Shown one piece after another: positions 1-39,960 of a stretch of DNA of 64,000 nt. Every line of letters begins with the position of its first letter. The first letter of the stretch is position 1. The stretch covers positions 744,001-808,000 of the forward strand of contig JANHCV010000015.1 of assembly GCA_025594325.1 (NCBI GenBank). Reading direction: 5' to 3'. This stretch comes from Blastocladiella emersonii ATCC 22665 (Eukaryota; Fungi; Blastocladiomycota). Under the pieces are notes generated by a model. The model worked only from the letters and a program-made list of their open reading frames with translations. It did not search any database and was not told the origin of the DNA. A program made the translations under genes and the position numbers.

Positions 1-2
1 GC

Positions 3-950
3 GACCGGTCGGCGATCTCGGTGTGGATCGGCGGCACCGCGACTGCAAATCCCGGCCCGAACGCCGTCTCCACGCTCGGCCGCCGTCCCGCGACCGCCGA
101 CGACGTGCGCGCCGCGGCCCACGCGGTGCCGAGCGGCGTGGTTGCCGTCGACGCGCCCGTCCCGCCGCCGCTCGGTGGGACGAATGCCGCGGCGTACAAG
201 CTCACGCGCAGCAAGAGTGTGCCGGGCTCGGCGCAGGGGATGGTGGCGGGCGCCGGCGGTGGGAGTCTCCCGCGGTCCGCGTCCGGGTCGATTCGGCGGT
301 CGTTTGGGTGGCGCGCCAACTCGACATCGGCCGCATCGTCCTCGGCTTCGGCAGCGGGGGATGCGGCCGATCCGTCCCGCCGCCGCGCGCGCAGTACGCC
401 GCCGGGATCGGGCGACGCGATGCCTGACGCGACCGCGCCGCCGCCGGTCCCACCACTCCCTGCCAGCAACAGCGCCGACAGCAGCGACGCGGCGAGCTAC
501 ATCCAGCCGCCGCCGGGCTCGCCGTGGGACGACATTGACGGCGTGACCGTGGTCCCGGCGTCCGCGCTCCTCGCGGCCCTCGACCCGGCGGTCCTGACCG
601 CGTCGACGGTCCGGTACCACAAGTTCCTCCTGCTGCAGCGCTCGCACGCGGGCCTGTACGCGCAGCGCATGGCGCTGCCCATCGACCTCGTCCTGTGCAA
701 CTGGACGCACCTCCTGTACCCGCCGCGGTACGTGCGGTTCGCGGGCACGCATTTTGGGCGATTGATCACGTACGAGTTTGCCACCCCGCAGGCGCTCGAC
801 GCCGCGCTACGGAATACCGCGCGCAAGTGGCGCCGCAGGTACCGCGAGCGGCTCGATCCCGGGTTCCGGCCCAAGTTGTCGTGGAGCGATAAGATCGTCG
901 CGGTCCTGGATCGCGTGGTCGGGCGGTTGGTGAGTTCGGGGCCCATGTAG
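3..950 (+). CDS. 5'-partial protein with a GRDP-like (glycine-rich domain-containing protein family) C-terminal domain
   Basis: The frame is open to the window edge. After a low-complexity Ser/Ala/Pro region, RYHKFLLLQ...PIDLVLCNWTHLLYPPRY resembles the GRDP motif Y..FL.L....P..DIDL.WHTH.L.P..Y. Confidence 0.5.
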   Translation, partial: DRSAISVWIGGTATANPGPNAVSTLGRRPATADDVRAAAHAVPSGVVAVDAPVPPPLGGTNAAAYKLTRSKSVPGSAQGMVAGAGGGSLPRSASGSIRRSFGWRANSTSAASSSASAAGDAADPSRRRARSTPPGSGDAMPDATAPPPVPPLPASNSADSSDAASYIQPPPGSPWDDIDGVTVVPASALLAALDPAVLTASTVRYHKFLLLQRSHAGLYAQRMALPIDLVLCNWTHLLYPPRYVRFAGTHFGRLITYEFATPQALDAALRNTARKWRRRYRERLDPGFRPKLSWSDKIVAVLDRVVGRLVSSGPM

Positions 951-1018
951 CGCTGGGATGGAAGATGAATAATAAATACTTGGCATCGATGCGATTCTTG
1001 AGGTCCTCGCTGGCTTTC

Positions 1019-1340: not shown

Positions 1341-3985
1341 CTAGCGATCAATCTCAACAATCCGGTCGTCCACCACGCCATAGTCCACCTCCTCCTCCTC
1401 CGCCTCGCCCTCAAGCGCGTCGTTGGGAGAAGCAGTAATGGCGCGATACTCGGCCCCGTTTGCGCGATACAGTGGGAGCAGGAAGCACCGGAACATGTTT
1501 CGCTTGAGCCCATCAAAGAAGTCGGGCTGGATCCCTCTTGGGTTGGGACGCGCGTCCGTTGGCGACGACGCAAGGCCGTCCTGGAGCAGCTGCATAAAAC
1601 AGTCCACGTAGCCCGGCATGAGCGTGATCTGCTCGCTGGGCGTGAAATCCGAGCCCAGCTTCCGCACGACGGCAGGCAAGTACGCGTCAGCCAGCTCGGG
1701 AACGAGCTTCAGGCCTGGGTAACCCCACGAAACCGCGATGTCCGGGTGCGGGACGACGCTCAAGTCAAGCACGGGTGTGTGGGCACGGGCGGCCTCGCAC
1801 GGAGGAAGCACTGAGATGCGGTTCACGAGCAGGAGTGCGAGAAGTTCCTTCTTCTCGTTCAACACCTTGACCAAGGGAAGCGCGTCCCGATGGATCAAGG
1901 CGAAGAGCCGCGCGAGCGTAACACGCAAGAAGCGCGCCCGCTCAGCGGCGGATGGAGCTCGCTTCGAGTCAAGTACGCGCCGCTGCACGGCGTCGTCCTC
2001 GTCGTCGGTGCGCTCCAAGGAGAGCCGGTTCAACGCAACAATGAGCCCCCACTGTTCGTTCGTATCCAGTGCGTCCGCGTCCGAATCATCGGCGAGGTAG
2101 GGCACGAGAGCAAGGCGGGCCAGTCCGTCCTTGGCCACAGCGAGCACACGGGCGACGGTCACCGTCACGCGACGGGCGAGGCGTTCAGGGTGGCCGTCCA
2201 CGAGTTCGGCGCACGAGGAGAAGCGATACGACTGGGTCGCGCCCCCGACCTTGAGATCGAGGGTGCCCGGCGCACCAGCACTGGAACGCGAAGGAAGCGG
2301 CGTAAGCTGGGTCTTAGTCGAGCTGAGTCGTGGTTCATCGTGTTCCATATCAAGAAGACGTACCCAGCGATGGCAATGGCGCAGCTCGATCGGGACCGCG
2401 GAGCGCTTCGGCGCAGCGGATGAGCGCCCCAGCGAGGAACGGCGACTCTTTCAGGGCAACAGGAACACTGGGGAAATCGAGCTTGTAGAATGTAAACGGC
2501 TCGAAGGCGCGATCGTCGCGTCGCTCGACGTGCTCGCTGCTCCAGGTGAAGCGCGTGACGTGCGACGCCCAGTCGCTGTCCGTGGCGCGCTCAAAGTAGT
2601 TGATACCAAGCAGCGTCGGAAGCGCCTCAAGCGGAAGGCCGGTGGCGCGGCAAACAAAGTCGTCGCGCGAAGCCGCAACGGAAGTAAGGTGCTCGGTCGA
2701 CGTGTAGATGAGCGACCGCATGTTGGCCTCGTTGTTCGCCAGCAACGGCGAAGCTTGAACGAAAAGGTTGAGCAGACCGCACGTGTCGATGGCCGAGCCC
2801 GTGTGGATCGCAGGGAACCGCTGCTCGCGCGAAACGAGCGACTCCAGGACCGCGACGGGTGAGCCGACGCAAAACGCGATGCGGCACTGGAAGTGCGGCG
2901 GCACGCATGCCTTGCCCCACTTGGTGACAAGCAGATACGGACCCGTGCGCCGTGTGTCGCACCTGGGACCAAATGCGAGCGCGAGCGGGTCGAGGAGGTC
3001 GATGGCGGCCTGAGCTGTCGCGCCCAGCGACTCGAAGGTAATGGGGGAAAAGACGTCGAGTACGACGTGATCGAAAGGCGAAGAGAAGCGGAGCGAGCCG
3101 TCGGGGCACACGAGGAGCATGGTCGGGTTGATGTCCGTTGCAAACGCGCTTTCATCTTTCGCCTCCGGACTCTCCGTATCAAAAAAGTAGGCGCCGGTGT
3201 TGATAAACTTTTCGAAACCCCGCTTGAGTGCATCTTGTCTGTCGCCCGGAATTGCCAGCAGTTGCGAATTTTAGCCGACCAAGCCGCGCAAGCATCGCTC
3301 AGCGGCTCGCTGCGCGTACGTTTAAGTCACGGAGGGAGGGCAAGCGCGCTCGTAGTAAGCATTCCGGTGGGCGTAGAGCTGCTCGGGCGTCCAGCCGGCG
3401 GCATCGAGCCATGACTTCCAACAATGGCGAACTGCGCCCAGCGTGGCGTCGTCAACGACCCGGATACGAGCCGCGGAGCGGTTCCAGTTGACAGCGAGGC
3501 ATGCGCGCATCTGCTCTTCCCAGAAAGCACGGGGATTAGGTTGGAGCAGGAGCGAAAAGTAGAGCTGGCCCAAGTAGTACGCTGGAGCGCCACCTTTGGC
3601 GGCGAACTTGCCGTTCGAAATCGCATAAAGCACCCAACAGGTCGCGCGCAAGGACCTCGGGGCGCGAGTTGCCGAAAACAAAGTTCAGGCCCGCGGTGCC
3701 ATACTTGCGCGTCGCACCATGGATCGTGTGCGCGACGTCGCGCAAGCTGCCAAACTGGAGAGCAAGCACGTCAAGCCGTGTGACATCGCGCGGGTTGTGG
3801 TGCAAGAGCAGGTCGCGCGAGTAAGACTGGCCAAAGGGATAATACGGGTCAGTCACGTCGCCGCCGCCAAGGAGCGCCGGGCCCGATGTCGCCGGTGCGA
3901 CTGGCGGCGGCGGCGGCTGCGAAGTGGAAGAAGAATTGCCGCCGCGGGATACTTTGCCGATAGTCTTGACCGCTTTCGTCTTCAT
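1341..3985 (-). pseudogene. DUF4470-domain gene disrupted by several frameshifts and stops
   Basis: YYPFGQSYSRDLL...LDVLALQFGSLRDVAHTI...LNFVFGNSRPEVLARDLL matches the DUF4470 pattern. One extra base at 3633-3635 shifts the frame; removing it restores EVLARDLLVLYAISNGKF. Further breaks occur near 3320-3230 and 2350. Confidence 0.7.
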
Positions 3986-4332
3986 TTGTTTTGCATCGAG
4001 TGTGAGGAGAGCAGCTGCGGCGGAGCGTCGGATTTGGGCATGGTGACGCTTGCGCGGACGATCAGGTGACCACATCAGCGAGACTATCACGCATCTCCAC
4101 TTTCGCCTACCCTGTTCGCATCCTCGATGGGCTTTGTGGAAGCTGGCGCTCTTGATCTCAAGCTGTACAGACAAGGGCCATGTCCGGATTGCTTCAGCAT
4201 GACCTCGCGCAAGGAGCGCCGTGCGGCCCGCATGTATCTCCAAGAGGGCACTGGCAACGCTAAGCCTGGCGTCGCGCCCCTTGAAGTCAGGTAGGCAGCG
4301 GTTGCAGCGAGTGCGCCGCTGGCCTGTCGGGC

Positions 4333-9313: not shown

Positions 9314-9531
9314 ATTTGCCCTTTCTCCTTATAAGTTCAACAATATACTCTAGTTCAGAACATTCGTTCAAACCGGTACCACGACGTATTGACAGGACGC
9401 GTTGCGCCACTTGCTCGACGTGGCAGGCGCGCCGCGTGACGTTTCGGCGCCGCAGATCGACCGACTTGGAGCGATGAGCGGCGCTCTCGCCCTACACAAC
9501 AACGCTCCCCATCCGATTCACTCCCAACACC

Positions 9532-10863
9532 ATGGAAGCCAATGAACTGCATGCAACCCGCCCGGCGCGCTTCACGGACCTTCCCGCGGAATTCTCGACT
9601 CGATTCAAATTGACGAGTACGGGTGCTGCCTTGCCCCTAGTGTTGACTTGAAGCCATCGGCAATGTCGACTCGGACGCAAGCTCAGACTCGCAACCCGAA
9701 CTTGACGAGTTTGTTGCGGCGCGCAATGTCGGTGCCATCATTCGCGAAATCGCTGCGATCGCAGAGCTTCGGTTGCGTCGGGGATTCCGTGAGCACGGCT
9801 TCATCAGTGACGCTGCTCTTGACGCACTTGCGCGCTTGGGCGCGCCCAACGACGTGATCGCCTTCATATCCAACTTCCAAGGCGCCATGTTTGTCTTTGC
9901 CGATTACAACCGAGCAGTGTACCGGTACAAGGGAGGCAATTGGTTTGACGTTCCGTTTGAGGGGTCGCTGGCTGTTCCGTACGGTCAACTGCTCGTTGCA
10001 CTCCTGTGCGACCAGATGACTTCGGCCGAACCGCTTCAAATGCTCGGTCAGCAAACGTCAGGTTATGCACTTCCTGACGCTCACAGGCACTTTCACCTAC
10101 TACTTTTCCCCGGCGTTCGGCGCGGTGCCCGTCCGCTGTCGCACTGGAGCCCAAGCGTCTACGCGTACATTGATTCGCTGCCGCTCGTCTGCTTCAAACA
10201 CGCGAGCTTGCAAGCGTCGTTGCCGGCCGTGGACATGGCGCAAGGCCGCGATCGTGGTCACGGTGAATCATACAATTTTCGGCCATCGAGCCGATCCCAC
10301 GTTCCGCTCATGATTCCTCGCCGCAGCCGCCCGATGACCTTCCTGACTTGTCGTGGGCGCCATGGCAGTACGCGATCCACTGCATGCTGAGCAAGGTTCC
10401 GGGGCTCACTCCCACGGCGTAGGCGATTCCTGAGGACGCTCGCATTTTACTCTTCTCGCGCGAGGCGCTCTGCCGCACAAGCTTCTTGTACCTCGGCGAG
10501 GCTGCAAGCGGTAGTACTGGACCCGGTACCAAGGCGGCATGGATCATTGAGCAGCTGTACCGCGCCGCGCCCGCTGTCTTTGTTAATGACATCGTTCAGG
10601 TCAGCGTGACGAGTCCGGCGTTTACTTGGCGCATGCTCCCGCGCGGCGCCCTGAACGGACTCCGGCCGTACAAGTGGCTCCTCGCCGCCGCATGTGTGGC
10701 CCTGGACCGCCTTACAAGCCGGGAAACTGTAATGCGCGATGCGCTTTCTGATCTCTTCGCCGCGGCTTCAACAACGGCGCGTTCGCCCGAGTTCCGCGCC
10801 ATGTTTGCGGCCGAGTGCAGCTATCGCGGGATTGACGTGAACGTGTTCTTTGGTGACGATTAG
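9532..10863 (+). pseudogene. Decayed F-box gene
   Basis: ATG at 9532 gives MEANELHATRPARFTDLPAEF (F-box start motif), then the frame is lost. Protein-like pieces continue in ORFs 9773-10390 and 10486-10863. The 5' part is paralogous to 18985-19171. Confidence 0.55.
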
Positions 10864-11199
10864 ACCTGTACTCGAACAGAATATATCCACGTTACCTTCC
10901 TCACGAACTTTGTCTATAGGTCGGGATCCTGCTCGACGCGTCAATTGGCGAAGCGATGCGTTGTCGGCGGTGATGGTCAACCTGCCAGGGGCGCCACGAC
11001 CCTCTTGCGCCTAAGCATCGCGATCCGATCAGAGGAGCAACGCGACTGGCCCGGAACCATGTCGCTTTCGAGTCGAATGAACGACACGCTCCTGTGGGTG
11101 GATTGGCTGCTTCCCACGGCGCGCACCTGGCTTGGGTGTCGACGCCAAGGCCCCTCCCCCGTTCCCGCTCTTCCGCAACAACCCTCGCCCGCTTTTGCT

Positions 11200-13035
11200 A
11201 TGAATCCTTCTTCACCCGACTCGATGCAACCTCATGAACCGGTCCCCCTGACCCTCGACGCGCTGCCGACCGAGCTACAGCTCGACATTGCGTCGCGCCT
11301 CTCGCTCCGTGACGCGGCGGCTCTCCGCGCGACCTCTCGTGTCATCAACGACTCAGACCTCTGGCGCGGCAAAGTGTGGTGGGGCTTGCTCTTTGCTCTC
11401 GCAGCGGGCGACCATGACCGCTTCTTCGCGCTGGCGCCGCCGTTTTACGGTCCTCGCCGCCGCCGCCGTTCTCGCGCTAACGAGAGCCCGAAGCCGTGCA
11501 CCAACGCCGAGATGAAAGCTATCTTCCTCGACCTCGCTATTGCTCTCGTCACTCGCGACGTGGGCGACCGCAAGCGGTGGGCGATCCTGCGCTCGTGGGC
11601 ATGCGGCCGGCTGCCCGTCAGCGAATACCCGTATGTGCGGCTACATCGTCTTGCCATGGACCACAGCGCCATCAACGCGATGCTCGTCGTCTCGACGTGG
11701 ACCAACCGCAACGGCCGCAACCTGCACGACATGTACGTCAAGCTTCGCCGCCCGACCCGCTCGCCGCTCGCACACGCGATTCAAATTGTCAGCACGACTG
11801 TGGCGAAACGCAGGTTTACGCCCGAGCAGATCGCGCCGCTGTTGCGCGCCAAGTTCTACTCGGCGTGCCAGCTGCGCCAGGTCCACGCTGCGGTCCGCCT
11901 TCTCCTCGCGCAACCGCCCGAGTTTTGCCTCGACGTTCTACTCGACGCGCCCGCGCACGCCAAGTTTGAGCCCGACAGTCGCACGTGGTCGCTCGAGAGC
12001 GTATTCGAGTCGATCATGCAGGCGTCGCTGCGCGGCGGCGGGGCCATTGCGGTCGCGCGCCTCATGGCGGACCTCACCATCCTCGCACACGCGGCGGGGT
12101 ACGAGGGCCGCGGCGACGGCGGGACCAATATCGAGATCGAGCTCGTCAACGGCGGCATCGAGCCCGTCCGCGCGCGCGTCGAGGCGCTGCTCCCCGAACG
12201 CAACCGCGCTGCTGCCGTTAAACGCCTCGACGCGCTGCTCCCCGTGTTCGGCGCCAACGTGCTCGGCGGCACCGTCTTCTCGCGGCCCTGGCGCGACCTC
12301 GGCGTGCTGCGCGATCCGCTGCCGGGTGCCGTCGACGAGACGCTGCAGCAGGCGCGGTGGTGGTACCCGAACGCAACCATCATTCGTGCCGTCTCGGAGC
12401 GGCTCGTCAGCAAGCACCCGAGCTGGCCCGCCGCTGCGATCCCGGACGTCGCCCAGCGGTTCCCGATCTGCTTCCACCCCAACCTGCACAACTTTGCCGG
12501 TATCCCGAAAGCGTGGCGGCTGCGGTCCGAGCCGTTCACGGACGCCGAGTGGCACGCGCTGCACGCCGACCTCATGGCCGTGTACCGCCGCGAGTCGTCG
12601 CCCGCAGACGACGAGGACGCGGTCGCGGCGCGGTGGCAGTGGCGCGTGATGCCCCAGGACCGCGGCGCGCTGCAGGCGCTCATTGACGTCGAGTACCCGG
12701 GCATGCCGCGCGAGCTCGATACGGACGAGGCCCTCGACGCGCACCCGCTCGGCGTCAACGGGCTCGGGCTGCAGATGATCACGGTCGTCCAGCAGCACAC
12801 GGGCAAGCCGGGCGGCGGGCGGTGGCTCGCCGAGAACGTCACGACGCTGCGAGGCCGGCCGTGGCGCATGTCGGGCGACCTGGTACGGCGCATCCTCACG
12901 GCGCCGTGGGCGTCGCGGCACAAGGTTGAGGTCGTCGCGTTCCTGACGGGCGCGCAGCGGTCGGGGGTGCTGAGCGACCCCATTCTCTGCGATCGCGTTG
13001 AGACGTGGTGTCACGGAGCGACGTCGAGCTCTTGA
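11200..13035 (+). CDS. F-box protein, intronless, C-terminal region of unknown family
   Basis: LTLDALPTELQLDIASRLSLRDAAALRATSRVIN is a canonical F-box. The ORF is long and uninterrupted; likely start is the ATG at 11200. Confidence 0.85.
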   Translation: MNPSSPDSMQPHEPVPLTLDALPTELQLDIASRLSLRDAAALRATSRVINDSDLWRGKVWWGLLFALAAGDHDRFFALAPPFYGPRRRRRSRANESPKPCTNAEMKAIFLDLAIALVTRDVGDRKRWAILRSWACGRLPVSEYPYVRLHRLAMDHSAINAMLVVSTWTNRNGRNLHDMYVKLRRPTRSPLAHAIQIVSTTVAKRRFTPEQIAPLLRAKFYSACQLRQVHAAVRLLLAQPPEFCLDVLLDAPAHAKFEPDSRTWSLESVFESIMQASLRGGGAIAVARLMADLTILAHAAGYEGRGDGGTNIEIELVNGGIEPVRARVEALLPERNRAAAVKRLDALLPVFGANVLGGTVFSRPWRDLGVLRDPLPGAVDETLQQARWWYPNATIIRAVSERLVSKHPSWPAAAIPDVAQRFPICFHPNLHNFAGIPKAWRLRSEPFTDAEWHALHADLMAVYRRESSPADDEDAVAARWQWRVMPQDRGALQALIDVEYPGMPRELDTDEALDAHPLGVNGLGLQMITVVQQHTGKPGGGRWLAENVTTLRGRPWRMSGDLVRRILTAPWASRHKVEVVAFLTGAQRSGVLSDPILCDRVETWCHGATSSS

Positions 13036-14901: not shown

Positions 14902-17049
14902 ATGGACTTGTACAATGAACTTTGGCTCTCTGTCGTGGACCACTTGCTGCAATATGGACAGCGCACCGATGTCTTGGCGCTGTGCATGACTTGTCACCGG
15001 TTCTCAAAGCTGGCCCGCCCGGTCCTCCGCCGGACCATGCGCGTCGAACTCGCGCTCAATGAACTCGACGAACTCGACTCTGTGAGGCCTCCTTCGGGCC
15101 TCTACCTTCACGGCGCTGCGCTTCAGGCGTGGCCCGAATGGATGTCGCTCGTGCGGGAGCTCGACATCGCGCCGGGGCGACTTCCCGTTTGGCACGGACA
15201 GAGCGATCAGCCGTTTCCAATCTCTCCGGTTCCGATACCGATACCAGTTCCCTCGCCAGCGCCAATCGATTCTCAACAACATGTCAACCCTCTTGAACCG
15301 CTCGTTGGTGCTACCGTTGCGGTAGTTGTCGTGCAAGTGGCGGAAGCCTGCCCGCTTCAGTCGCTTCGAATTCATGACTTTTCGCTCAGCAACGCGTGCT
15401 TGATCGAAACCTGCAAGAGCGTTGCGAGCCCGCTCGTGCGACTCAGCCTCTCGCTACATCGGCCATCAGAAGCCCTTGACCTCGGCCTCCTCACTCTGCC
15501 GTCGCTCGCCTCGCTCGAGCTTTATGTTCTCGACCCCGTAAGCACGCCCAATCGACTCGAGGCGCTGCCTCGCACACCCAAGCTTCGGAATCTTACTCTC
15601 ACGCTTCCGGTTGCTGCACCACACGTCGCTGCCCAGATTCACGCCATGCAACACTTGCGCTCGTTGCAGCTACGTCTCAATCCCGGTGCTGGACGCTCCG
15701 AGTTTCAAGCTGCGCTCATTGCGCCAGGCTTCCCCGCTTCGTCGCTCGTACACTTTGAAATGCATAGGCTCAGCGTCGAGGAACTTGAACGACTACCGCC
15801 TATGCCGCGACTCCAATCCATGATCATGCAGCGCCACCAGAGCCACATCGAAGTCGGACCAGACCCAGCGCTTGACTCCCTGTCTATGGGCCTCGATCGC
15901 GCGGAGCGGATTGCGGCGCACTTTCCAAACCTGCGTCGGGTCACGATCACTGGACCGAGCACGTCTGACTTGGTCGTGGATCTGCGTTGGCTGAGCCTCA
16001 CCCCATCTCTTGCGTTCATTGACATGGGGCGGCTATATTCCGGGGCGCGCGGCCCAGGTAGCCCTAGGATAGAGACCCTTTTGGCCGACTGTCGCGATCT
16101 CACATTCCCCTCGTTGGAGAATCTGACTGTTCCCCACGCATTATGGAAGCCTCTCACTCGAGTTCTTCAGGCACCAAATCTCACGGCTCTCTGTATCCGC
16201 GGGCCACCCAACACCACTTCCAACCTTCTCGCGTCGCATGCGTCCTCTGCGCGCCTGACGCACCTTGAGCTCGACGTCCGCATCGCGAACTTCTCACTGC
16301 AACCCAGCATGTTCCCGTGCCTCCGTTCGCTCTCAATCCGCCCAGTTTCTAACAACACCATTGCTGGCCAATGCATGTCCGCGTGGTCGACTGTCACTCG
16401 ATTGCAGCTTCTCGACATGTGGTCTCTCACGTCGCTCTTCGACCTGCACATCGTGTTCGCCGAGTTTCCAGCCGTGCGGGAACTCACACTCAGCGCGGCG
16501 ACCACGTCAATGCCTGGAATCGCCCTTTTCCTTGACCCGCGCGCGTTGCCCGAGCTCACTGGTGGTCGCAGAACGTTACAGAGGCTGATCATTGAGAATG
16601 ATGACCGCTGCGTGATATGGCACAGCGATGCCGCCAGTCGCGCGACTCCCATCGACATTCGTTGGACGCGCTGGTCCCAAACGCAGGTGCTGCGCGAGCT
16701 TGCAGAAAAGACTCGACTCTCTGGTGCTCCGTTGGGCATCCATTTGCGCATCGGGTTCAGCGACGATGCGCCTGATCCGGGCGGCGCTTCGACCGTGGCG
16801 AAATTGCTCGCTAAGTTTGCTAATTATCAAGGCGCTGAAGTAGCGGTGGGTCCGACGCTTGTCGAGGCAGCGGAGGAAGCTGGGTCAAAGAAGGGCGGGG
16901 TCGCGCGTTGGCTCAAACGCAAGCTGAGCCTTCTTTCCGTCAAGGCAACGGCGCCCGCGGTGAGTGACGACGGCGTTTGCGACCCTTGTGTGATCGCGGC
17001 GCTGTGCGAGTGCCTCGGAACGGCCGGCGTCAAATATCAAATGCTATAG
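14902..17049 (+). CDS. F-box / leucine-rich-repeat (RNI-like) protein
   Basis: N-terminal LYNELWLSVVDHL...DVLALCMTCHRFSKLARPVL is F-box-like. Many LxxLxL repeats follow (LRNLTL, LRSLQL, LENLTV, LTHLEL, LRSLSI). Confidence 0.8.
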   Translation: MDLYNELWLSVVDHLLQYGQRTDVLALCMTCHRFSKLARPVLRRTMRVELALNELDELDSVRPPSGLYLHGAALQAWPEWMSLVRELDIAPGRLPVWHGQSDQPFPISPVPIPIPVPSPAPIDSQQHVNPLEPLVGATVAVVVVQVAEACPLQSLRIHDFSLSNACLIETCKSVASPLVRLSLSLHRPSEALDLGLLTLPSLASLELYVLDPVSTPNRLEALPRTPKLRNLTLTLPVAAPHVAAQIHAMQHLRSLQLRLNPGAGRSEFQAALIAPGFPASSLVHFEMHRLSVEELERLPPMPRLQSMIMQRHQSHIEVGPDPALDSLSMGLDRAERIAAHFPNLRRVTITGPSTSDLVVDLRWLSLTPSLAFIDMGRLYSGARGPGSPRIETLLADCRDLTFPSLENLTVPHALWKPLTRVLQAPNLTALCIRGPPNTTSNLLASHASSARLTHLELDVRIANFSLQPSMFPCLRSLSIRPVSNNTIAGQCMSAWSTVTRLQLLDMWSLTSLFDLHIVFAEFPAVRELTLSAATTSMPGIALFLDPRALPELTGGRRTLQRLIIENDDRCVIWHSDAASRATPIDIRWTRWSQTQVLRELAEKTRLSGAPLGIHLRIGFSDDAPDPGGASTVAKLLAKFANYQGAEVAVGPTLVEAAEEAGSKKGGVARWLKRKLSLLSVKATAPAVSDDGVCDPCVIAALCECLGTAGVKYQML

Positions 17050-17692
17050 CGAAAGAAGGAGCCGTGGACGCGTCTGCATGTTCCGTACGTGCGGTCCAAT
17101 AGAAGTACATCGTTCCTCAGTCTTGCAAGCAACTTCGTGGCTCTGACTCTTCACCACGCCCTACCTCTCACACCAAAGAAAGCTAGCGTTAACGGATCAA
17201 GCGCACGAGGTGAGGTGCCAGTAGGCGCGTGCTACCAGATTTGAGGTTGAGAAAACGCTAGGGGTCCAGTGACGGTCTTTGCGGTTGAAAAACGCGCAGC
17301 TCGTCGCCTCAGATCAAGTGAGCCCGACGTTTGTGCACGACGTGTAACCCTCGCTTCGCATTCAAGATTCATGGCGCGTAGTTGTGTGGTCCCAAGAGCA
17401 GGCCACGGCAGAGGCGCCGATGCGGTGGATGACGCGACGCGCCACTCGCATGATGCGGCGGCGCCACTGCAAGAACGCCGCACTTTGCCCTCCGTCCATG
17501 ATCGCCTCGGAGCAAGTCAAGGACAACGCAGACGCATCGAATGTGATTTCAATTTCGAATTCTAAACCGTCGAACGCGGTACAGAATGAGTTCAAGCTCC
17601 TCAACGCCGATCGAGAGAGGTGGATGGCGGGGTGGGGAGAGGGGAGCGAGATGTCAGGGGTGGGGGTGGGGTGCGGGGAGGAACAGAGCACG

Positions 17693-18242
17693 ACGTACCG
17701 GAGATGTTGCAGAAGGCGTAGATCTGCAGCACGTTGACGTAGGTCGGGGTCAGGAGCGAGTACTGGATGAGGTTGAAGATCGGGTGGTACCACTCGAGGT
17801 ACAGGAGCGACGACACGAGGTACACGCCGTACGTGGCGACCAGCGAGAAGAGCGTGAGCGCGACCTTGTTCTCGTCGAGGCGGGCAAAGGCGTTGAGCGA
17901 GTTGAGGCCGCGGAGCTGCGCGAGCTCGGGTTTTTCGATCTCGAATTGCGCCATTGTCGAGAGCACGATGATGGCGAGCATGGTGATGGCGACGATGGCG
18001 AACAGGACGATCACCATGTGGAAGACGTGGCGGGCCGACTGCGGGCGGTTGCCGAGCGAGGCGATGAACGTGATGCACAGGGCGAGGACGTAGAGCGGGC
18101 GCAGGATGAGGAGGAACGAGGACACGGCCGTGTAGGTGCCCGGGTGGTTGGTGCGCGACGGGATCGACTTGAGGTACACCGAGTTCGGGTTCTCCATGAG
18201 CAGGATGAAGCCCGAGACCAGAGTGTGGAACGCGATGTAGAA
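17693..18242 (-). repeat. 550-bp near-identical copy of part of chitin synthase exon 3 (24676-25225)
   Basis: Base-by-base comparison at offset 6983 is identical except two substitutions near the 5' (high-coordinate) end. It encodes the same [11 protein letters not shown]...QIYAFCNIS peptide. Confidence 0.97.
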
Positions 18243-19060
18243 GTGAGCCTCGGCACGTTCCTGCAGCGTCGTTGCGGGCTCGAGTTTTGGAAGCGAACGG
18301 TGGGGAATCGGGGTAGAAGATGTATGTTTTGCATAGATGTGATCGAATGCCTGCGAACAAGTCTTGGGTAGGAGCGCCCGTGGCAGCACGGCCAAGTACT
18401 GGCAGAGCGTGTTCAGACCCGAGGGGTCCAGCAAGAAAGCCTCGCACAAGATGGCATCTACCAAATGCGGGTATCTTAAGAGATGATTTCATGGTTAAGT
18501 CATGAGTGGGATGTCCGAGAGGAGAGCGCGAGCGGCGCGAACGAAGTTCGGGACAGGCTCGATTTGTGGGAGATGAATGGTCGGCCCCACCTTGGTAAGC
18601 ACGCAGTCGTCCTGGTTGCCAAAACTTTTGCTGTGTAGGCGGCCGAACGGCTCGGGCGTGAGTCGCGCGATCAGGCGCTGAAGAGTAGGTCCGTCAAACG
18701 CGTCGGCAGCAGGGAGCCAACGGTTGAAGTCACTCGTCTGGGACGCGGACGCGACACACTCGCGATCAGCCAAGTGGTACAAGTAGCGCGCAAGCGGCAA
18801 GCAGTTGTGCGGAACATCGGTCTGTGGCGACGGGTTCGGGCTCCGCCATTCGTGAAAATCGGGTTGGAGCACAAAGGCGCAGACCCAGACCGACTGGGTC
18901 GCCGAGTCGGACGCGATCGCTGCGAAGCCGGCCGTTGACAGCGCAACGGCGAGGCGAGGGATCGCAGGACCACCGCCGTGACGAGTTCTGCGGGAAGGTC
19001 CGCGATGCGCGCCGGGCGGGTTGCATGCAGTTCATTGGCTTCCGTGGTGATGGGTTGCAT
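18243..19060 (-). pseudogene. Decayed F-box gene whose reading frame runs into the chitin synthase exon copy
   Basis: MQPITTEANELHATRPARIADLPAELVTAVVL (F-box start), a frameshift near 18960, then two in-frame stops (TAA at 18495-18497 and TGA just after). ORFs 18495-18872 and 17601-18464 share one frame. Confidence 0.7.
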
Positions 19061-19267
19061 TCGGCGAGAGTACTGGTGGTGGTGAGGGTCGCACCGCTCA
19101 TCGCTCCAAGTCGGCTGGTCGGAGTCGTCACGCGGCGCGCCTGCCACTACGAATGCGTGGCGCAACGCGTCTCGTCGCTCCTGACAAAGAACCAGCGAGA
19201 ACGCAGCCGATGTTTGCAAAGATCTCAGGCGAGTGTATTCAGTGGCAGTGCTACATGGGCCCGGAAC

Positions 19268-20262
19268 TCACCAACCGCCCGACCACACGATCCGCGGTGC
19301 GGGACCCGCGGGCGCGCCATTGCCGCCGGGCGACTCGTCGTCCGAGTCTTCGGGGTTATCGCTGGACGCGTTCGCCGCGCCCGCCGCCGCAGCGGCAGGA
19401 ACCGCGCTCGGGTCGGGCTGCCCGGCGTACGTGAGCCACGCGAGAACGAGCGTCGCGGTCGTCCGCCAATGTCCGCGGACGCGGGCGACGAGGTCGAGCG
19501 AGAGCGGGGTGACGAGGTCGCGGTAGCACCGCTCCATGCGGTCGATGGCGGCGCGGATGTGCCACGAGATGAGGCGGTGGTCCTCGAGCTCGAGCGCGTA
19601 CAGGTCGACTTCGAGGCGGAACAGGACGTCTGTTGGTAGGACGGGGTCAGTGAGGGTTGGTGGGGTGAGGGATAACGAAGGGCGTACTCGAGATGTCGCG
19701 CCACGGATCGAGTCTCTGCGACCGCTGCGCCTTGTGGCTGCTGCTGCCGCCGGCGGGGTTCCAGAACCCGAACCCGGAGGAGGTGCTGGCTGCCGTGTTG
19801 GTGCGCTGCGGGCGGTGGTGGTGGATCCCAGCCGACGCCGACGCGTGCGGGGTCGGCCCGACCTCGGACGACGCGGCGCTATCCGCCCCACTGCCGCCGC
19901 CAAGCGTCGCGGCGCTGCTGCCGGGCCCGGTCGGCGGCGTCGCGTTACCCGGCAGCGTCACGATCTCGTCGCCGTCCTCGTCGGCTTCGGGGACGGGCGA
20001 CGGCGCGGCGCGGCGGGGTGCTGGTACAGGTGTTCGGGCGGAGTCGGGGTCGGGGTCCCGATGGGGTCGGGGTCGGGGTCCCAATAGGCACGGCGATGGC
20101 ATTGTAGAGGTCGACGACGGAAGGCACGTGGGCGAGGTAGAGCACAATCTGCCTGGACAGGTAGTGGTTGGGTCCGACCGAGACCGAGACCGAGATGGGG
20201 TTGAGGCGGGTGCCCGCGACGTAGGTGTTGGACTCCCGCTGCGAGCCTCTATAGCTGTCCAT
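19268..20262 (-). CDS. Hypothetical low-complexity protein, probably with one intron (about 19628-19685) and a possible frameshift near 20070
   Basis: A GTACGC...CTGAC...CAG intron is followed by the helical coding segment VLFRLEVDLYALELEDHRLISWHIRAAIDRMERCYRDLV. Confidence 0.4.
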
Positions 20263-20860
20263 GAAGCATGCTCGGATTATTTGTTTTCATCGCAGGGAGT
20301 CTTATTAAGTGCATTCGCGGCGGTGGCCATGCAAGAGAGAGCGAAAGCGGCCATTGAGCGCGTCGGACAGAGCAATCGAGGCAACGTTGAGTGTCTCAAT
20401 CGCCTCACGTGTTTGTTCGACGCGTCTCTCACTCATTGTCCGGGAAGGTCCTGCACAAGAAAGCAGCGTTAAAAAGCGGTGGGACTGATCTAACGTTGCT
20501 CTAATGCGACTCGATGGCGACGGGGGCTAGTCCTCGCGGCGGACAGTCGAACGGCCTCAGCGCGACACGCGCGAAGTGAGGGCCAACAAGGAGCAGACAC
20601 TTGAATACAAAACAACGCCGATCAGACAATGGGCACGGCGGTTGTGCCGCCATGAAATGCTTCGGATGCGCCGTTGATCCCAATGGCTCCAAACGAGCCC
20701 GCTGCGACAAATCGTTCCCACGCGCGGACCCTGCGACCGCGCTGACGCGTCAGCTCGGGCAGAGCGCCAGGAGACGTGTCCGAAGAAGCGTTTTATTCAC
20801 GGGCTCAAGGAGTTTGCGGCCGAGATCGCGGCCAGGCCCGACTTTGGCGAGGCCGTCATC

Positions 20861-23332
20861 ATGTCGCGCCGGTGGTACGGCACGTTCGAGTCCGAGACGC
20901 AGGCGCTCGCGCACCGCTTCGGCCCCGCGAAGGAGCCAATTGCGCCTCATCGAGCGGTCCTCGTCCAGGACAGGTTTGTATCCTGGCAGTACCGCAAGGA
21001 GAAGGGCCGCAAGGAGCACTCGATCAAGTGGCGTCCCTGCTGTCGCCGCTGCGGCGACTGGCACCTACGCGCGCCCAGCTACTGCCCGTCGCACACGATC
21101 TGCGAGTCGTCGGCGCCAGCAGCTGCGGCCAACAAGGACGCGCGCGGTGCCTCCGACACGCGCAACGAGCAGGACCAGCGGCTCGCTGTGCGCAAGGCCG
21201 TCCGCATCCTCAACGGGAACCCGCACCGCGTCACGGACCTGTCGTACCCGCCCACCGAGCTCGGCTTCGACATCCCGCGTTTCCTCACGGCCAAGCGCGT
21301 CTTCAAGAAGGCGCCGCCCGCCCGCCTCGACCTCGGCCCCGCTGCCGTCCCGCGCATGGTCAGCGCCGACCAGCAGCGCGCCATCTCCGACCTCAAGCTG
21401 ACCGCCGAGCAGGCCGCCGCCGTCCTCAAGGTGCTCGCCGCCGACGCGCTCGTCGTCTCGGATCCCACGACCAGCGCCGCGCCACCCGTTGTGCCTCCCC
21501 TCCCTGCGCCCGCCGCCGAGTCGACCGCGACCACCCCGCTCGACCAGATCCTCGCCCTGTTTGCGCGGTGCCGCAAGCCCGGTACAGCGCTCAACCAGTT
21601 TGTCGGCCGCGCCATGGCCAGGTGGGACGCCGAGGAAGACGACGGTGACGAGTGGGAGCTCAAGGACGTCGACGACCGTGACGACGAGACCGCGACCGCG
21701 ACCGCGACGCTCGAGGTGCCGCCGCTCGCTGGCGTCACGTCGCGCGGCGGCAAGTCCCGCAAGGGCGCCCGCACCACGTCCGCTCGCCGCGACCACGGCG
21801 CCGCGCGCGAGGGCCACCGCCCGAAGCTGTCGATGCTCGCGCTGCTGCGGCCGGCGGGCCCGTACCCGATCCTGCCGCCCGAGCGCATGTACGCGCGCGT
21901 CACCGACAGCCCGAGGGATGCGCGCACGCGGGGCGCGTTCTACGACGTGGACGGCGTGCTGTGCCGCCTGATTTACCCGAACTTTGTTCGGTATTGCTGG
22001 CGCCACGTCCGCGTCGGCAGTAACTGCGGCGCGTGCGGCGGGAAGAACGAGTGCCGCCATGGGAAGATTCGCCGATTCTGCAGCGACCCTACGTGCGGCG
22101 GCGGGCAGTCGCTGTGCCAGGAGCACGGCAAGGACAAGTACAATTGCGCGCTCTGCCGCGGCGCCCCGATCTGCCGTAACCACGGCAACGGCTGCGACCG
22201 TGGTGGGCACGAGGCCTTTGACTGGTACTGCGGCTGGTGCTTCCGCAAGACCGACAAGGTGCGCGCCGGTCGCGCGTGGCGCGGGGCCAAGGAGCGCTTC
22301 GTCGCGAGCGCCGTGTACCGCCACGTCGCCGCCCGCTACCCGGGCATGGTCGTCATCCACGACGAGCCCGTCGAGCGCGGCCGCTGCATCCGTCGGCCCG
22401 ACCTCCTGTTCCTCGCCGACCGCTTCCGCCTCATCGTCGAGATTGATGAGCACGCGCACAACGCCTACGACCAGGAGGACGAGATGTTGCGGGTGCTCGA
22501 GATCCAGGACGCGCTCGGCCTGCCCACCATCGTGCTGCGCATCAACGTCGACGGGTTCCGCCGCGCCAGCGGCGAGTCGGTCAAGTCGCCCTTCCACTCG
22601 CGCGACCTCGACGCGCACGGCCTGCCGATCCTGCGCGAGGGCAGCGCGGCCGCGGCCGACTGGAGCGCACGCATCGAGCGGCTGCTCGCGCGCATCGACG
22701 CGATCCTCACCGCCAACGCCCCGCACGACTCGGTCACGGTCGAGTGGTTGAACTACGACGGCGACTGCGGGCGCGGTCGCGGTCGGCTGTTTGTCCTGCA
22801 CGACGACGACTCGGTCTCGCTCGGCGCCCCGGGTTCCCTGCAGCTCACCAAGTTCGTCGCGTCGTCGGGCAACAAGTATCCGACCGCCTCGTGCCCCGAC
22901 CAGGCCAAGCTCGATCAGGAGGACGACGAGCTCGAGTACCAGGGCGACGACGAGGAGGAGGAGGAGGAGGACTACGACGGCGTCACGTCGGGCTCGTCGC
23001 AGGTGGGCTACGAGGACGAGGACGAGCTCGAGTCGGCCATCTCGCTCGCGGGCTACTACGGCGGCGACGACGACGACGAAGAGGAGGAGGACACGGACGC
23101 GGACCAGTACGAGCTCGAGATGGTCGAGTCCAAGGAGGTGGACGAGATCGACGTGGCCAAGTCGTTGTCGGCGGCGGCGGTCGGGTCGCGCGGCATCAAG
23201 CGGTCCGCGTCCGACGCCGTGGCGGATGGCGGCGACGAGGACGCGCCGCACCGGCCCGCTAAGCGCGTGCTGACGCGGGCGGCCCAGAAGCGACAGCAGC
23301 AGCAGCAGCAGCAGCAGCAGGCCGAGGAGTAG
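20861..23332 (+). CDS. Cys/His-repeat protein with a Vsr/DUF559-like PD-(D/E)xK endonuclease of NCLDV type and an acidic/polyQ tail
   Basis: Intronless 823-aa ORF. CxHGK..C..CGG.S.C.HG repeats, then YCGWCF...KERFV...RRPDLLF...LIVEIDEHAH..Y..EDE..RVLEI..ALG.PTIVLRINVDGF...DW..RIERL...VEWLNYD, colinear with giant-virus 'restriction endonuclease' proteins as I recall them. Confidence 0.8.
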   Translation: MSRRWYGTFESETQALAHRFGPAKEPIAPHRAVLVQDRFVSWQYRKEKGRKEHSIKWRPCCRRCGDWHLRAPSYCPSHTICESSAPAAAANKDARGASDTRNEQDQRLAVRKAVRILNGNPHRVTDLSYPPTELGFDIPRFLTAKRVFKKAPPARLDLGPAAVPRMVSADQQRAISDLKLTAEQAAAVLKVLAADALVVSDPTTSAAPPVVPPLPAPAAESTATTPLDQILALFARCRKPGTALNQFVGRAMARWDAEEDDGDEWELKDVDDRDDETATATATLEVPPLAGVTSRGGKSRKGARTTSARRDHGAAREGHRPKLSMLALLRPAGPYPILPPERMYARVTDSPRDARTRGAFYDVDGVLCRLIYPNFVRYCWRHVRVGSNCGACGGKNECRHGKIRRFCSDPTCGGGQSLCQEHGKDKYNCALCRGAPICRNHGNGCDRGGHEAFDWYCGWCFRKTDKVRAGRAWRGAKERFVASAVYRHVAARYPGMVVIHDEPVERGRCIRRPDLLFLADRFRLIVEIDEHAHNAYDQEDEMLRVLEIQDALGLPTIVLRINVDGFRRASGESVKSPFHSRDLDAHGLPILREGSAAAADWSARIERLLARIDAILTANAPHDSVTVEWLNYDGDCGRGRGRLFVLHDDDSVSLGAPGSLQLTKFVASSGNKYPTASCPDQAKLDQEDDELEYQGDDEEEEEEDYDGVTSGSSQVGYEDEDELESAISLAGYYGGDDDDEEEEDTDADQYELEMVESKEVDEIDVAKSLSAAAVGSRGIKRSASDAVADGGDEDAPHRPAKRVLTRAAQKRQQQQQQQQQAEE

Positions 23333-23950: not shown

Positions 23951-26900
23951 TTAGCAGAAGCCGACGAGGTGGCCGAGCCAGTACACGCACGAGAAGAAGA
24001 AGCGGATGACCGAGAAGATCAGGACCGCGATGAACAGGCCGAACAGGTAGTCCTGCGTGAACTTGGTCGCGCCCGTGATGCCAAAGGTAGCGGGGGAGAG
24101 CACGGCGCCAGCGAGCAGGCCGTTGACGCCGACCCAGATCATGAGCCAGAGCGTGCGGAACTTCTTGAAGTTGTCCTCCTTGTTGTCCTCCTCCTCGTTC
24201 TCCTCGTCGGGCTTGCGCATCTCGGTGACGAGCGCGTTGAAGCGCTGCTCGGTAGCCGAGAAGAAGTCGTTGGCGGCGCGCAGTGGGACCGCCGCGAGCT
24301 CGTCGGTCGGGACGCCGCCAGAACCGCCGCCGCCGCCCGCCGCACCGTGGCCAGCGTCAGAAGCTCCCTTGGTACCCCAGCTTAGGTCTGGAACGCCCAA
24401 TAATATGTTGGTGAGGTTGGGGGAGGTCGGGGGAGGTCGCGGGAGGTCGCGGTAGGTCGGGGAGGCGGCCGGAAGTCGAGGTGAGCCGGAGTGAGTCGAT
24501 GCGCCACGAACGTCGAGGAGACATGAAGGGCAAACGTTGTCGTCGTCGTTAGTGATGTTTCGTGAGGTGTGGTGAGGTGTGGAGGTGTGGGGGAGGTGAG
24601 GGAGGGGTGAGGTGGTCAAGTCCGGGCGGAGTGACTCGACGATCGATCGCGATCAGAGTGACGTCACAGATCAGCACGTACCGGAGATGTTGCAGAAGGC
24701 GTAGATCTGCAGCACGTTGACGTAGGTCGGGGTCAGGAGCGAGTACTGGATGAGGTTGAAGATCGGGTGGTACCACTCGAGGTACAGGAGCGACGACACG
24801 AGGTACACGCCGTACGTGGCGACCAGCGAGAAGAGCGTGAGCGCGACCTTGTTCTCGTCGAGGCGGGCAAAGGCGTTGAGCGAGTTGAGGCCGCGGAGCT
24901 GCGCGAGCTCGGGTTTTTCGATCTCGAATTGCGCCATTGTCGAGAGCACGATGATGGCGAGCATGGTGATGGCGACGATGGCGAACAGGACGATCACCAT
25001 GTGGAAGACGTGGCGGGCCGACTGCGGGCGGTTGCCGAGCGAGGCGATGAACGTGATGCACAGGGCGAGGACGTAGAGCGGGCGCAGGATGAGGAGGAAC
25101 GAGGACACGGCCGTGTAGGTGCCCGGGTGGTTGGTGCGCGACGGGATCGACTTGAGGTACACCGAGTTCGGGTTCTCCATGAGCAGGATGAAGCCCGAGA
25201 CCAGAGTGTGAAAGGCGATGTAGAACGAAGAGAGTGCCAAAAACGCGAAGAGGAAGTTGATAAAGTTGTAGAGCAGCTCGAGGAGGAAACCGATCTTGCG
25301 GAAGATCGAGTGGCCCGAGGAGAAGACGCGCTTGAAGTTTCCGATGGCGTACAGCGAGGCGAACGTCGAGCCGTTGAGCCAGCGGCGGCGCTGCGAGATG
25401 AACTCGGGGAAGTTGTCGGGGGCGTCGGTGATGGCCAGCGAGTTCTTCTCGTACCGCAGGATCCAGTCCTTGTTGTCGGCCATGGCGATCTCGAAGCACA
25501 GGATGCTGCGGGCGGTGGCGAGGAGGGTGGCGAGAGTGGAAGGGGGAGTCGCGAGGGTCAGCGATCGAACGGGCGCGGGGCGCGGCGGGCGCGCGCATCC
25601 GACACGAGGAGCGGCACGCGGAGCGACACGAGGAGCGACACGCGGCGCGACACGAGGAGCGACACGAGAGAGGGGCGTACCGGTCCTCGGCGAGGTACAT
25701 GTTGCCAGCAAAGATGTCAGACGAGTCGTGGAGCTTCTCGCCGATAAAGTACTTCTTGAGCGGCTCGCCGCGCAGGGCCTCGTAGCGGTAGGCCGAAAAC
25801 GCGCCGGGAAGTACGCCGATAAAACCGGCGACGCTTTCCAAAGGCTTGTCGAGGATGTTGCTCATTTTGTACTCGAAATTCTGCGCAGCGATGATCGGGT
25901 TGAGCAGCGACCAGAAGTTGCCCTCGACGGCGATCTCGCCGCACGCGCCGCCGACCTGCTTGTTGAGGAACACGCGCCAGAGGCGGTACAGCGAGAGCGG
26001 CTGCGGCTTGGTGCCGACGTCGAGCAGCAGGCACACGTCGGGCTTGAGCGACTCGGCGACGGCCGAGAAGAACCAGCGGTGCGAGTTGATCTTCTTGGCG
26101 TTCTTCTCCTTGAGGATGAAGAGCAGCTGGAGCGGGACGACGCCCTTGGTGCTGCTCTTGCCGGTCACGAGCTTGGTGCCGTCCTCGGGCGTGCCCTCGA
26201 AGCTCGTCTCGACCGTCGCCTCGAAGATGTGCGCCTGGACCTCGCGCTCGCCGACGCGGGTGCGCATGAGGCCCTCCTGGTAGCAGCCCATGAGGCCGAT
26301 GAGCGCGAGCGTGTCCTTGTTGATCTTGGAACGCCCGTCCGAGATGATGGAAATTACGACCTTGCGCCAGCCGTCCGGACCCCAGTTCTTCTCGTCCTGC
26401 TTCATCATGTCCTTCAAGTTGCTCGCAATACCTTGAAGGGTCTTGATAAACAGCCGGGGCCCTTCCTTGACAATTTTTGATGGAGCTAGCGTTAGTTTTG
26501 CCCGAAAACGGCGAGATCGGCGCGCGGAAGTGCGGGGAAGCGGGGCCAAACCCGAGCGAGTGGCCGGGGGGCCGGAAGGGCGAGGCAGAGGGCCGGGGAA
26601 TCGAGGCAACAATCAGGCAGACGAGGCAGAAGGTCGCGAAAGCGAGGAGGGGGGCGAGGAAAACGAGGTTAAAGTGAGAGACGCACGTTGTACATGGTCA
26701 CGACGATCAGGAGGTCGGTCGTGCGGCCGGTCTGGCGCAGCGAGTAGCCCTTCTCGACGAAGCGGTTGGGGCCCGTCGTGCACGCCGTGTAGCGGAGCTT
26801 CTTGAAATCGTGCTCCTGGTGCGTGAACTGCGACGTGAGCTGCGACGGGATGTCGACCTCGACGATGAGCGACGAGCCCGACAGCGTCTGCTGGATGTTG

Positions 26901-39717: not shown

Positions 39718-39960
39718 CTATCTGGCCCGTAACGTAACACCACACGTCTCGACGCTCGCGACCATGGCAGGGTCGCCGACCATCCCCACCCGCACTGCGT
39801 GTGAAAAGAGCGCGACGGCCTCGATCTTGTGCCACGACGCCCACGGCACCGTGACGATCCGCCGCGCCAACTCGGCCGACTTGCGCCACGGCTGCCCGCG
39901 CTGCGGCGTGACCTTCTCGGCGAGCCACCGCTTGCGCGCCCGCGCTGCGCCACCAACGTG
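39718..39960 (-). pseudogene. Orphan fragment paralogous to the C-terminus of the F-box protein at 11200-13035
   Basis: RWLAEKVTPQRGQPWRKSAELARRIVTVPWASWHKIEAV aligns with RWLAENVTTLRGRPWRMSGDLVRRILTAPWASRHKVEVV. Confidence 0.85.

Follow-up and report, generated by a model that had tools for sequence, protein, structure and literature searches.

Positions 17683-20262 of a 64-kb window of the Blastocladiella emersonii ATCC 22665 genome (C7:744001-808000, in the contig numbering of the 21-contig, 32.65-Mb assembly) hold four abutting gene fragments, designated F1 to F4, which all lie on the minus strand and together extend over about 2.7 kb. Positions given without a contig refer to the window, i.e., to the whole 64-kb stretch. 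A preliminary description of this DNA had regarded the locus as a mosaic with counterparts elsewhere, and the mapping of all four fragments to other genes confirms that it is a genuine one. Here we present a summary of the features of the locus, together with an interpretation in which it is probably the debris of duplications, parts of which were later overwritten by intact genes nearby.

Repeat pairs were determined by gapped self-comparison of the window (E<=1e-8), and positions 17300-20400 were used as the query of a whole-genome search. All exon-level readings were made on unspliced DNA; the only spliced protein considered is a GenBank gene model, which was mapped back exon by exon. The self-comparison yielded seven repeat pairs, three of which involve the mosaic. 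The first is a direct repeat (17683-18242 and 24666-25225) of 560 bp with an identity of 99.1% and without gaps. The second is inverted (18983-19171 and 9594-9396), with an identity of 78% including gaps and of 90% (90.0%) considering substitutions only. The third, also inverted (19246-19293 and 955-908), shows an identity of 94%. All three had been reported before, and they were recovered at the same coordinates. As a unit the mosaic block occurs only once in the 32.6-Mb genome, and neither of its flanks (16900-17700 and 20240-21100) has a second copy there. The features of the locus and of its counterparts are summarized in Table 1.

Table 1. Features of the mosaic locus, its counterparts in the window and the neighbouring nuclease-like open reading frame (ORF)
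Feature	Position	Strand	Description
F1	19246..20262	-	5'-truncated copy of A' (GRDP-like) with an internal deletion
F1 perfect tract	19362..19963	-	602 bp identical to A', intron within
F1 tail	19246..19293	-	48-bp copy of 908-955 in the preliminary description
F1/F2 linker	19172..19245	-	74 bp
F2	18498..19171	-	family-1 promoter and ~180 codons
F3	18249..18492	-	start of a family-2 gene of the leucine-rich repeat (LRR) type
F4	17683..18242	-	piece of a chitin synthase membrane region
F4 parent segment	24666..25225	-	in an intact chitin synthase gene, ~27.5-23.9 kb
Family-1 relic	9396..9594	+	promoter and ~25 codons
End of parent A'	1..955	+	intact gene, stop TAG 948-950
Nuclease-like ORF	20861..23332	+	intact, 823 codons; Cys-rich repeats, then a predicted PD-(D/E)XK-like domain of the Vsr/homing type (residues ~470-620, with RPD...VEIDEHAH)

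The genome was sequenced with PacBio HiFi reads (mean length 10.5 kb, 6.37 Gb in total) and assembled with the La Jolla Assembler, followed by purging of duplicate contigs and polishing with Pilon (PMC9730499). Chimeric joins or a collapse of repeats during assembly could in principle have created a locus of this kind. Perfect tracts of 535 bp and 602 bp, which are described below, are conceivable as the outcome of over-correction in assembly or polishing, and duplicate contigs were indeed purged (PMC9730499). The mean HiFi read, however, is far longer than every repeat found here and could span the whole 2.7-kb locus (PMC9730499); mis-assembly is therefore unlikely. Each fragment is moreover placed between unique sequence on both sides and away from any contig end, and sequence differences have been preserved at the edges of the tracts. 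We consider an assembly artefact very improbable.

Fragment F4 derives from an ORF which matches Chitin_synth_1 (PF01644, 1.2e-57) in Pfam and carries the motif QRRRW upstream of the copied segment. The preliminary description had named a chitin synthase exon as the source of a 550-bp copy; the source is correct, and the repeat measures 560 bp. F4 comprises 182 codons of the membrane region, with about 3-4 strongly hydrophobic stretches. It begins in the middle of an exon at FYIAFHT, inside a hydrophobic helix and downstream of QRRRW, and ends just beyond the splice donor GGTACGT, which is kept; similarity is lost about 10-17 nt into the intron. No chitin synthase sequence is present beyond F4, and the next exon (DLSWGTKG) is missing. 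Without a catalytic domain, F4 is a fragment and not a chitin synthase in its own right, whereas its parent has the features of one. The core of F4 (17693-18227, 535 bp) is 100% identical to the parent. All five mismatches of the 560-bp alignment fall within its outer 25 nt (edges of 15 and 10 nt), which has a probability of 1.8e-7 if mismatches are uniformly distributed; the two located in the exon are both synonymous third-position changes.

Fragment F1 is related to a gene, here called A', that spans C7:~741750-744950 and thus starts to the left of the window. A' consists of two exons of ~580 and ~500 codons. Its exon 1 matches the GRDP-like family PF07173 in Pfam (27.9 bits, cut-off 22.7), and the part lying within the window (21-950) yields a weak match to the same family (21.9 bits, below the cut-off of 22.7). 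Regarding the relationship of F1 to A', the whole-genome search aligned ~950 bp (20247-19292) with C7:742946-743843, the two being 90% identical. The start of F1 falls inside exon 1 of A', so that ~400 N-terminal codons are gone, and F1 retains the intron; both segments of A' that match the GRDP-like family lie outside the part retained. Relative to A', F1 has an internal deletion of 1066 bp with a 2-bp overlap (GG) at 19292/19293: query positions 154-1109 correspond to C7:742946-743843 and query positions 1108-1155 to C7:744908-744955. The deletion is out of frame, and the tail of F1 is therefore read in a new frame. A' positions up to 909 of the window belong to the deleted segment. The earlier report of a 48-bp copy of the 3' end of an ORF thus described a real match, which is just the tail of a copy of about 1 kb, the body of the parent being situated beyond the left edge of the window. 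The frame of F1 is shifted further by microsatellite-type indels (net +25 nt) at ~20090-20010. The linker of 74 bp between F1 and F2 was compared with both counterpart loci and resembles neither of them significantly (P = 0.22 and 0.06 in shuffling tests).

Within F1, 602 bp including the intron (19963-19362) are identical to A', although the alignment contains 103 differing columns in total. A run of this length was not obtained in any of 100,000 permutations. The homologous sequence on the two sides of this tract shows identities to A' of 89.9% and 86.2% and contains several indels. Perfect cores with differences confined to the edges, as seen in both F1 and F4, are most likely the signature of ectopic gene conversion, judging by the distribution of sequence differences. 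For F1, the long diverged flanks leave little alternative; for F4, conversion is presumed in preference to very recent copying. In both cases gene conversion appears to explain the near-identity of the copies better than a recent capture does. Ectopic conversion in which a gene is paired with a pseudogene copy close by is known from human CYP21A2/CYP21A1P and from the chicken immunoglobulin V pseudogenes. The locus resembles CYP21A2/CYP21A1P-type conversion in that a perfect tract lies in a diverged paralogue on the same chromosome, at a distance of a few to tens of kb, with one of the partners broken. It differs in that the broken partners are short truncated fragments, and in that a single locus contains partners of two different genes.

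Fragment F2 belongs to a lineage-specific family (family 1), for which at least 41 matches were found, the majority of them on contigs C5 and C6; intact members of the family measure ~450-470 amino acids (aa) and start with MEA(N/D)EL. The residues encoded by 19060-18534 (ATG near 19060) match the first ~181 residues of the family; the frame is broken by one frameshift near 18966, and the fragment is truncated at about residue 181. The promoter motif GAGACGCGTTGCGCCAC at 19173-19157 is common to the family-1 counterparts. In the form GAGACG(C/T)GTTGCGCCAC, the upstream motif was found at 19157-19173 (-), at ~9421-9437 (+) and at another family-1 locus, in each case ~100-130 nt before the ATG; two of these three copies contain ACGCGT. 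A related palindrome, TGACGCGTCA, is located at 20741-20754, upstream of the nuclease-like ORF 20861-23332. The relic at 9396-9594 is the closest relative of the start of F2 at the DNA level, yet it is shorter than F2. It was considered as the source of F2 and rejected, since only ~25 codons are present there versus ~180 in F2.

The label 'F-box', used previously for F2 and F3 together, was not established for either family by Pfam, by a profile search of the PDB or by an AlphaFold model. In Pfam, the F-box profiles (PF00646 and PF12937) did not match the fragment, six intact family-1 members or the family-2 members, and a search of the PDB with a family-1 profile yielded no match. When an intact family-1 member was modelled with AlphaFold, hardly any of residues 1-167 reached a pLDDT (predicted local distance difference test) of 50. 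A DLPAEL-type motif is the sole feature that would suggest an F-box in F2. What had been described as a single F-box body actually consists of two unrelated family fragments, F2 and F3. Nothing specific was found in the literature on an F-box expansion in Blastocladiomycota or on comparable patchworks.

Fragment F3 is the start of a member of a second family (family 2), which has at least 15 matches in the genome; all relatives of F3 are located on other contigs, including copies on C17. An intact member matches LRR_6 (25.5 bits, cut-off 23.4), LRR_1 (23.1 bits, cut-off 20.6) and FNIP (22.0 bits, cut-off 21). Of ~540 codons, F3 keeps ~80, which lie ahead of the LRR repeats. Its ATG (18492-18490) opens the sequence MKSSLKIP, after which one extra base precedes HLVDAILCEAF...; by this +1 frameshift after codon 8, F3 enters the frame that runs into the chitin synthase copy. 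Two stop codons (18497-18495 and 18491-18489) are situated just upstream of this ATG and overlapping with it, respectively. The count of one frameshift and two stops given earlier is accurate for these stops and for the frameshift near 18966, but incomplete, as further breaks occur in F1 and F3. A tandem array of five family-2 genes, head to tail with a spacing of ~2 kb, is found at C19:509698-518170.

Similarity to family 2 can be traced to 18249, so that F3 and F4 abut or are separated by a few bases at most. As had been claimed, the frame is open across the junction at 18243/18242: it extends from 18488 to 17604 over 295 codons and is the true chitin synthase frame. The ATG of F3 is out of frame with this ORF, and the ORF contains no ATG before the chitin synthase part.

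These data modify the proposed origin of the locus. It had been described as an assembly of three loci of the window; this is not supported, given that the relic at 9396-9594 is shorter than F2 and that the relatives of F3 are confined to other contigs. Two of the pieces, F1 and F4, do have unique sources on the same contig, 18 and 7 kb away. Exon shuffling is not supported, the chitin synthase and GRDP-like pieces both starting in the middle of an exon. Nor do the data support an active hub that produced a chimera; three of the four pieces are broken in frame, and the unconverted parts are ~10% diverged and therefore old.

The locus could instead have arisen in one or few steps of complex repair within a resident family-2 gene, either by template switching, as in fork stalling and template switching (FoSTeS) or microhomology-mediated break-induced replication (MMBIR), or by end joining with templated insertion. 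The chitin synthase gene, at a distance of 7 kb, would then have served as the template for the 560 bp, the GRDP-like piece perhaps being copied as well, and the near-identity would indicate that this happened recently. Known events of these kinds have in common with the locus that segments are short, that templates are no more than tens of kb away and may have either orientation, and that junctions overlap by 0-2 bp. Accordingly, the templates of F1 and F4 are located less than 20 kb away on the same contig, the pieces abut directly (at F3/F4 with a few bases at most), the deletion junction of F1 has its 2-bp overlap, and the mismatches of F4 stand right at its junctions, as error-prone synthesis would leave them. 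The flanks of the F1 tract, however, are ~10-14% diverged over ~350 bp and contain several indels, which is beyond what junction errors would produce; both exonic changes at the edges of F4 are synonymous third-position changes; and F2 and F3 are old and broken. As the F1 flanks, F2 and F3 are of old divergence, which sets the locus apart from one recent FoSTeS/MMBIR event, a single recent event cannot explain the whole mosaic. For F4 alone a recent repair event is possible; as an account of the locus we regard complex repair as rather unlikely.

Capture of gene fragments by a transposon, e.g., a Pack-MULE, a Helitron or a similar element, had also been brought into consideration. The classic appearance of Pack-MULE and Helitron capture is known from plants: pieces of several unrelated genes on one strand, with chimeric open frames that are called as genes. 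Fragments of several unrelated genes on the same strand are present here as well. Unlike in the plant elements, however, terminal repeats, repeated ends, multiple copies and a transposase are absent, and the pieces are of very different age. No inverted or direct terminal repeats bracketing 17.6-20.3 kb and no repeated flanks were found; the best inverted pairs measure 12-40 nt, which is the chance level, and none of them qualifies as terminal inverted repeats of the block. The flanks being single-copy, no element ends repeated elsewhere in the genome were detected (no search was aimed at Helitron termini or at the 3' hairpin), and the block itself was found once. The earlier remark that no transposase is visible can be extended, in that neither a transposase nor transposon ends were found at the locus. 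The single-copy flanks make a Helitron origin unlikely, and capture by a transposon of any of these types is hardly credible.

A possible product of the locus is found in GenBank. Used as a protein query, the open frame 18488-17604 showed a 100% match to 'hypothetical protein H9P43_009762', an ab initio prediction of 458 aa. Mapping of its exons revealed that the model consists of F1 exons joined to F4. It requires an 'intron' at ~20090-19977, where the parent A' codes continuously and F1 has its frameshift, and an intron of 1010 nt (19288-18279), which swallows F2 and F3. Introns of this kind are typical artefacts of ab initio prediction in pseudogenes, and the annotation of H9P43_009762 as a gene is very probably an error, the model being a pseudogene chimera. 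According to the genome paper (Leonard et al. 2022), genes were annotated ab initio with funannotate, and the passage on annotation lists only ab initio predictors; expressed sequence tags served only as a check of assembly completeness, and RNA-seq is not mentioned (PMC9730499).

The same paper emphasises domain recombination and fusions to transmembrane domains in B. emersonii (PMC9730499). H9P43_009762, or a fusion of F3 and F4, might accordingly be a young functional chimera of the type in which a domain is fused to a transmembrane module. The existence of the 458-aa model, the in-frame arrangement of F3 and F4 with its 295-codon open frame, the splice donor retained at the end of F4 and the stress laid on recombination with transmembrane domains in this genome (PMC9730499) all fit such a product. 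The model, on the other hand, depends on introns placed over the F1 frameshift and over F2 and F3, and the annotation it comes from is described with ab initio predictors and no word of RNA-seq (PMC9730499). The F3-F4 frame has no usable ATG ahead of the chitin synthase part, as noted above, and F4 begins in the middle of a hydrophobic helix. Among 5.8 billion sequences (range 162-516 aa), the same architecture was encountered only in the model from this genome. Like the chimeric genes of Drosophila that arose from partial duplications at the DNA level, and like the transmembrane-domain recombination reported for this genome (PMC9730499), the locus has a partial duplicate in frame beside a part of another gene; unlike in genes of the Drosophila type, the frames are broken upstream and a usable start codon is missing. 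We hold a functional chimera to be quite improbable. The same degree of doubt attaches to the more far-reaching view of the locus as a stage 'caught in the act', at which pieces for a soluble domain and a transmembrane module have been juxtaposed in the kind of recombination that shaped the signalling genes of B. emersonii, refreshed by conversion and perhaps promoted by the adjacent giant-virus-like endonuclease of the homing type, so as to yield a transcribed, selectable chimera such as H9P43_009762. The locus is presumably not expressed as protein.

We thus favor, with a probability of about 0.6, an interpretation of the locus as non-functional duplication debris in a gene cluster with fast turnover, the pieces of which were joined at the DNA level and the cores of which were converted later. 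Partial duplication, deletion and end joining would have placed four truncated pieces side by side. F2 and F3 would be relics of two expanded families, and F1 and F4 would have been copied in part from the intact genes at distances of 18 and 7 kb. F1 would stem from an old inverted duplication, with a substitution divergence of ~10%. F2 may go back to the same duplication: it differs from 9396-9594 by ~10% substitutions, similar to the flanks of the F1 tract, and the two fragments and their counterparts show the same order and inverted orientation. Later, ectopic conversion by the intact parents would have overwritten 602 bp in the core of F1 and 535 bp in that of F4, the edges staying diverged. 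The events presumably took place in this order. The adjacent ORFs are intact at 580, 687 and 823 codons, versus the frame breaks in F1, F2 and F3, and in an assembly of HiFi reads polished with Pilon these breaks are probably real.

Several observations weigh against this interpretation. The diverged edges of F4 measure only 15 and 10 nt, and a very recent copy whose junctions were synthesised in an error-prone manner would look alike. The F3/F4 junction is in frame (chance about 1/3) and the four pieces share one strand (chance about 1/8), both of which would also fit selection for a fusion. A single event giving rise to F1 and F2 is neither supported nor contradicted by the 74-bp linker, which matches neither counterpart; the counterparts are at present 8.4 kb apart.

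Birth-and-death evolution of clustered families of the F-box/LRR type is known from nematodes and plants. The situation described here is similar in that large, clustered, lineage-specific families contain many truncated or frameshifted members; it differs in that Pfam does not identify the families as F-box and that pieces of housekeeping-type genes have been taken in as well. Overall, the locus is best regarded as an ordinary patchwork pseudogene of a known kind in a birth-and-death gene cluster.

On this interpretation as debris with converted cores, the locus would show that an early-diverging fungus still undergoes ectopic gene conversion over distances of 7-18 kb. It can serve for the correction of the annotation and as a marker of active ectopic recombination. 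Partial gene copies that land side by side and in frame are raw material for domain recombination, and the locus indicates that such material arises in this genome; if the chimera were expressed, it would represent a rare, datable snapshot of the origin of a new gene. Recombination between the copies of the 535-bp direct repeat could delete 7 kb and thereby truncate a chitin synthase gene; in the case of the 602-bp inverted repeat, it could invert 18 kb.

The endonuclease gene that had been mentioned at a distance of 0.6 kb corresponds to the ORF 20861-23332 (+), for which a structure model predicts a restriction-endonuclease-like fold. ORF 14902-17049 was considered as an alternative candidate for the endonuclease and rejected, as it resembles an F-box/LRR protein. 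ORF 20861-23332 had no match in Pfam or NCBIfam, and a sequence search of the PDB yielded no useful match. A full-library HMMER search found 1079 relatives, and in a protein atlas the ORF falls among clusters of giant viruses (Nucleocytoviricota) with EsV-1-7 cysteine-rich motifs. The residues P-D, E-x-D-E and H are invariant across 44 aligned relatives, nine of which contain PF19114. The model of the C-terminal domain has a pLDDT of 84.7; with Foldseek the best E-value was only 1e-3, and nearly all matches were PD-(D/E)XK nucleases. Comparison with VIA-align gave Z values of 7.9 for I-Bth0305I (93 aligned residues, root-mean-square deviation 3.0) and of 7.5 for Vsr, a range that indicates a common fold only. 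The gene is single-copy at the DNA level; five or six paralogs were counted in the genome, and some of these contain stops.

A neighboring endonuclease of the Vsr or homing type could have made local breaks, the repair of which from nearby templates would account for both the copies and the tracts; this would modify the explanation by duplication and conversion and not replace it. In its favor, the ORF is intact, the modelled domain is most similar to I-Bth0305I and Vsr, and the pattern of P-D, E-x-D-E and H is invariant across the relatives. The gene also lies between F1 and the chitin synthase gene, hence inside the direct repeat formed by F4 and its parent, and a paralog on C19 is bracketed by a direct repeat of 361 bp with 95% identity, the copies of which are 4.6 kb apart. 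These copies are located at C19:1963717-1964077 and C19:1968359-1968725. Two other paralog loci, however, lack such a pair, one having no repeat at all and the other a genome-wide element resembling a long terminal repeat (LTR), so that two of four loci with a bracketing repeat are at best suggestive. Activity and target site are putative, the Z values are compatible with no closer relationship than a common fold, and the gene is single-copy at the DNA level. A link between the nuclease and the mosaic is a lead, not evidence, and we judge a contribution of this kind to be unlikely.

Lineage-specific families with many copies, and fragments of genes, abound in the window and around it, and the window lies within a large zone of family expansion. 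A DUF4470-like family with a member at 2390-4012 has dozens of copies (65-78% identity) concentrated at C7:~520-870 kb, and the segment 29360-30900 belongs to a family of at least seven dispersed copies with 74-85% identity (contigs 1, 5, 6, 18 and 21). A scan of 15-27 kb of the window against Rfam yielded no match. ORF 14902-17049 (+) is intact with 715 codons and convergent with the mosaic. Its N-terminus is F-box-like and is accompanied by LRR-like repeats; the ORF belongs to a further lineage-specific family and showed no match in Pfam, PHROGs or the PDB. An inverted repeat of 210 bp (12809-13015 and 39733-39942, 76.5% identity) consists of the C-terminal end of the F-box-like ORF 10945-13035 and an orphan copy 27 kb away. 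Finally, an element of ~378 bp (e.g., C1:534693-535069) is present in at least 30 copies with 93-98% identity in the genome; several of these form same-strand pairs 7.3-8 kb apart, which resemble the LTRs of a young retrotransposon, and one copy is located inside the family-2 array on C19.

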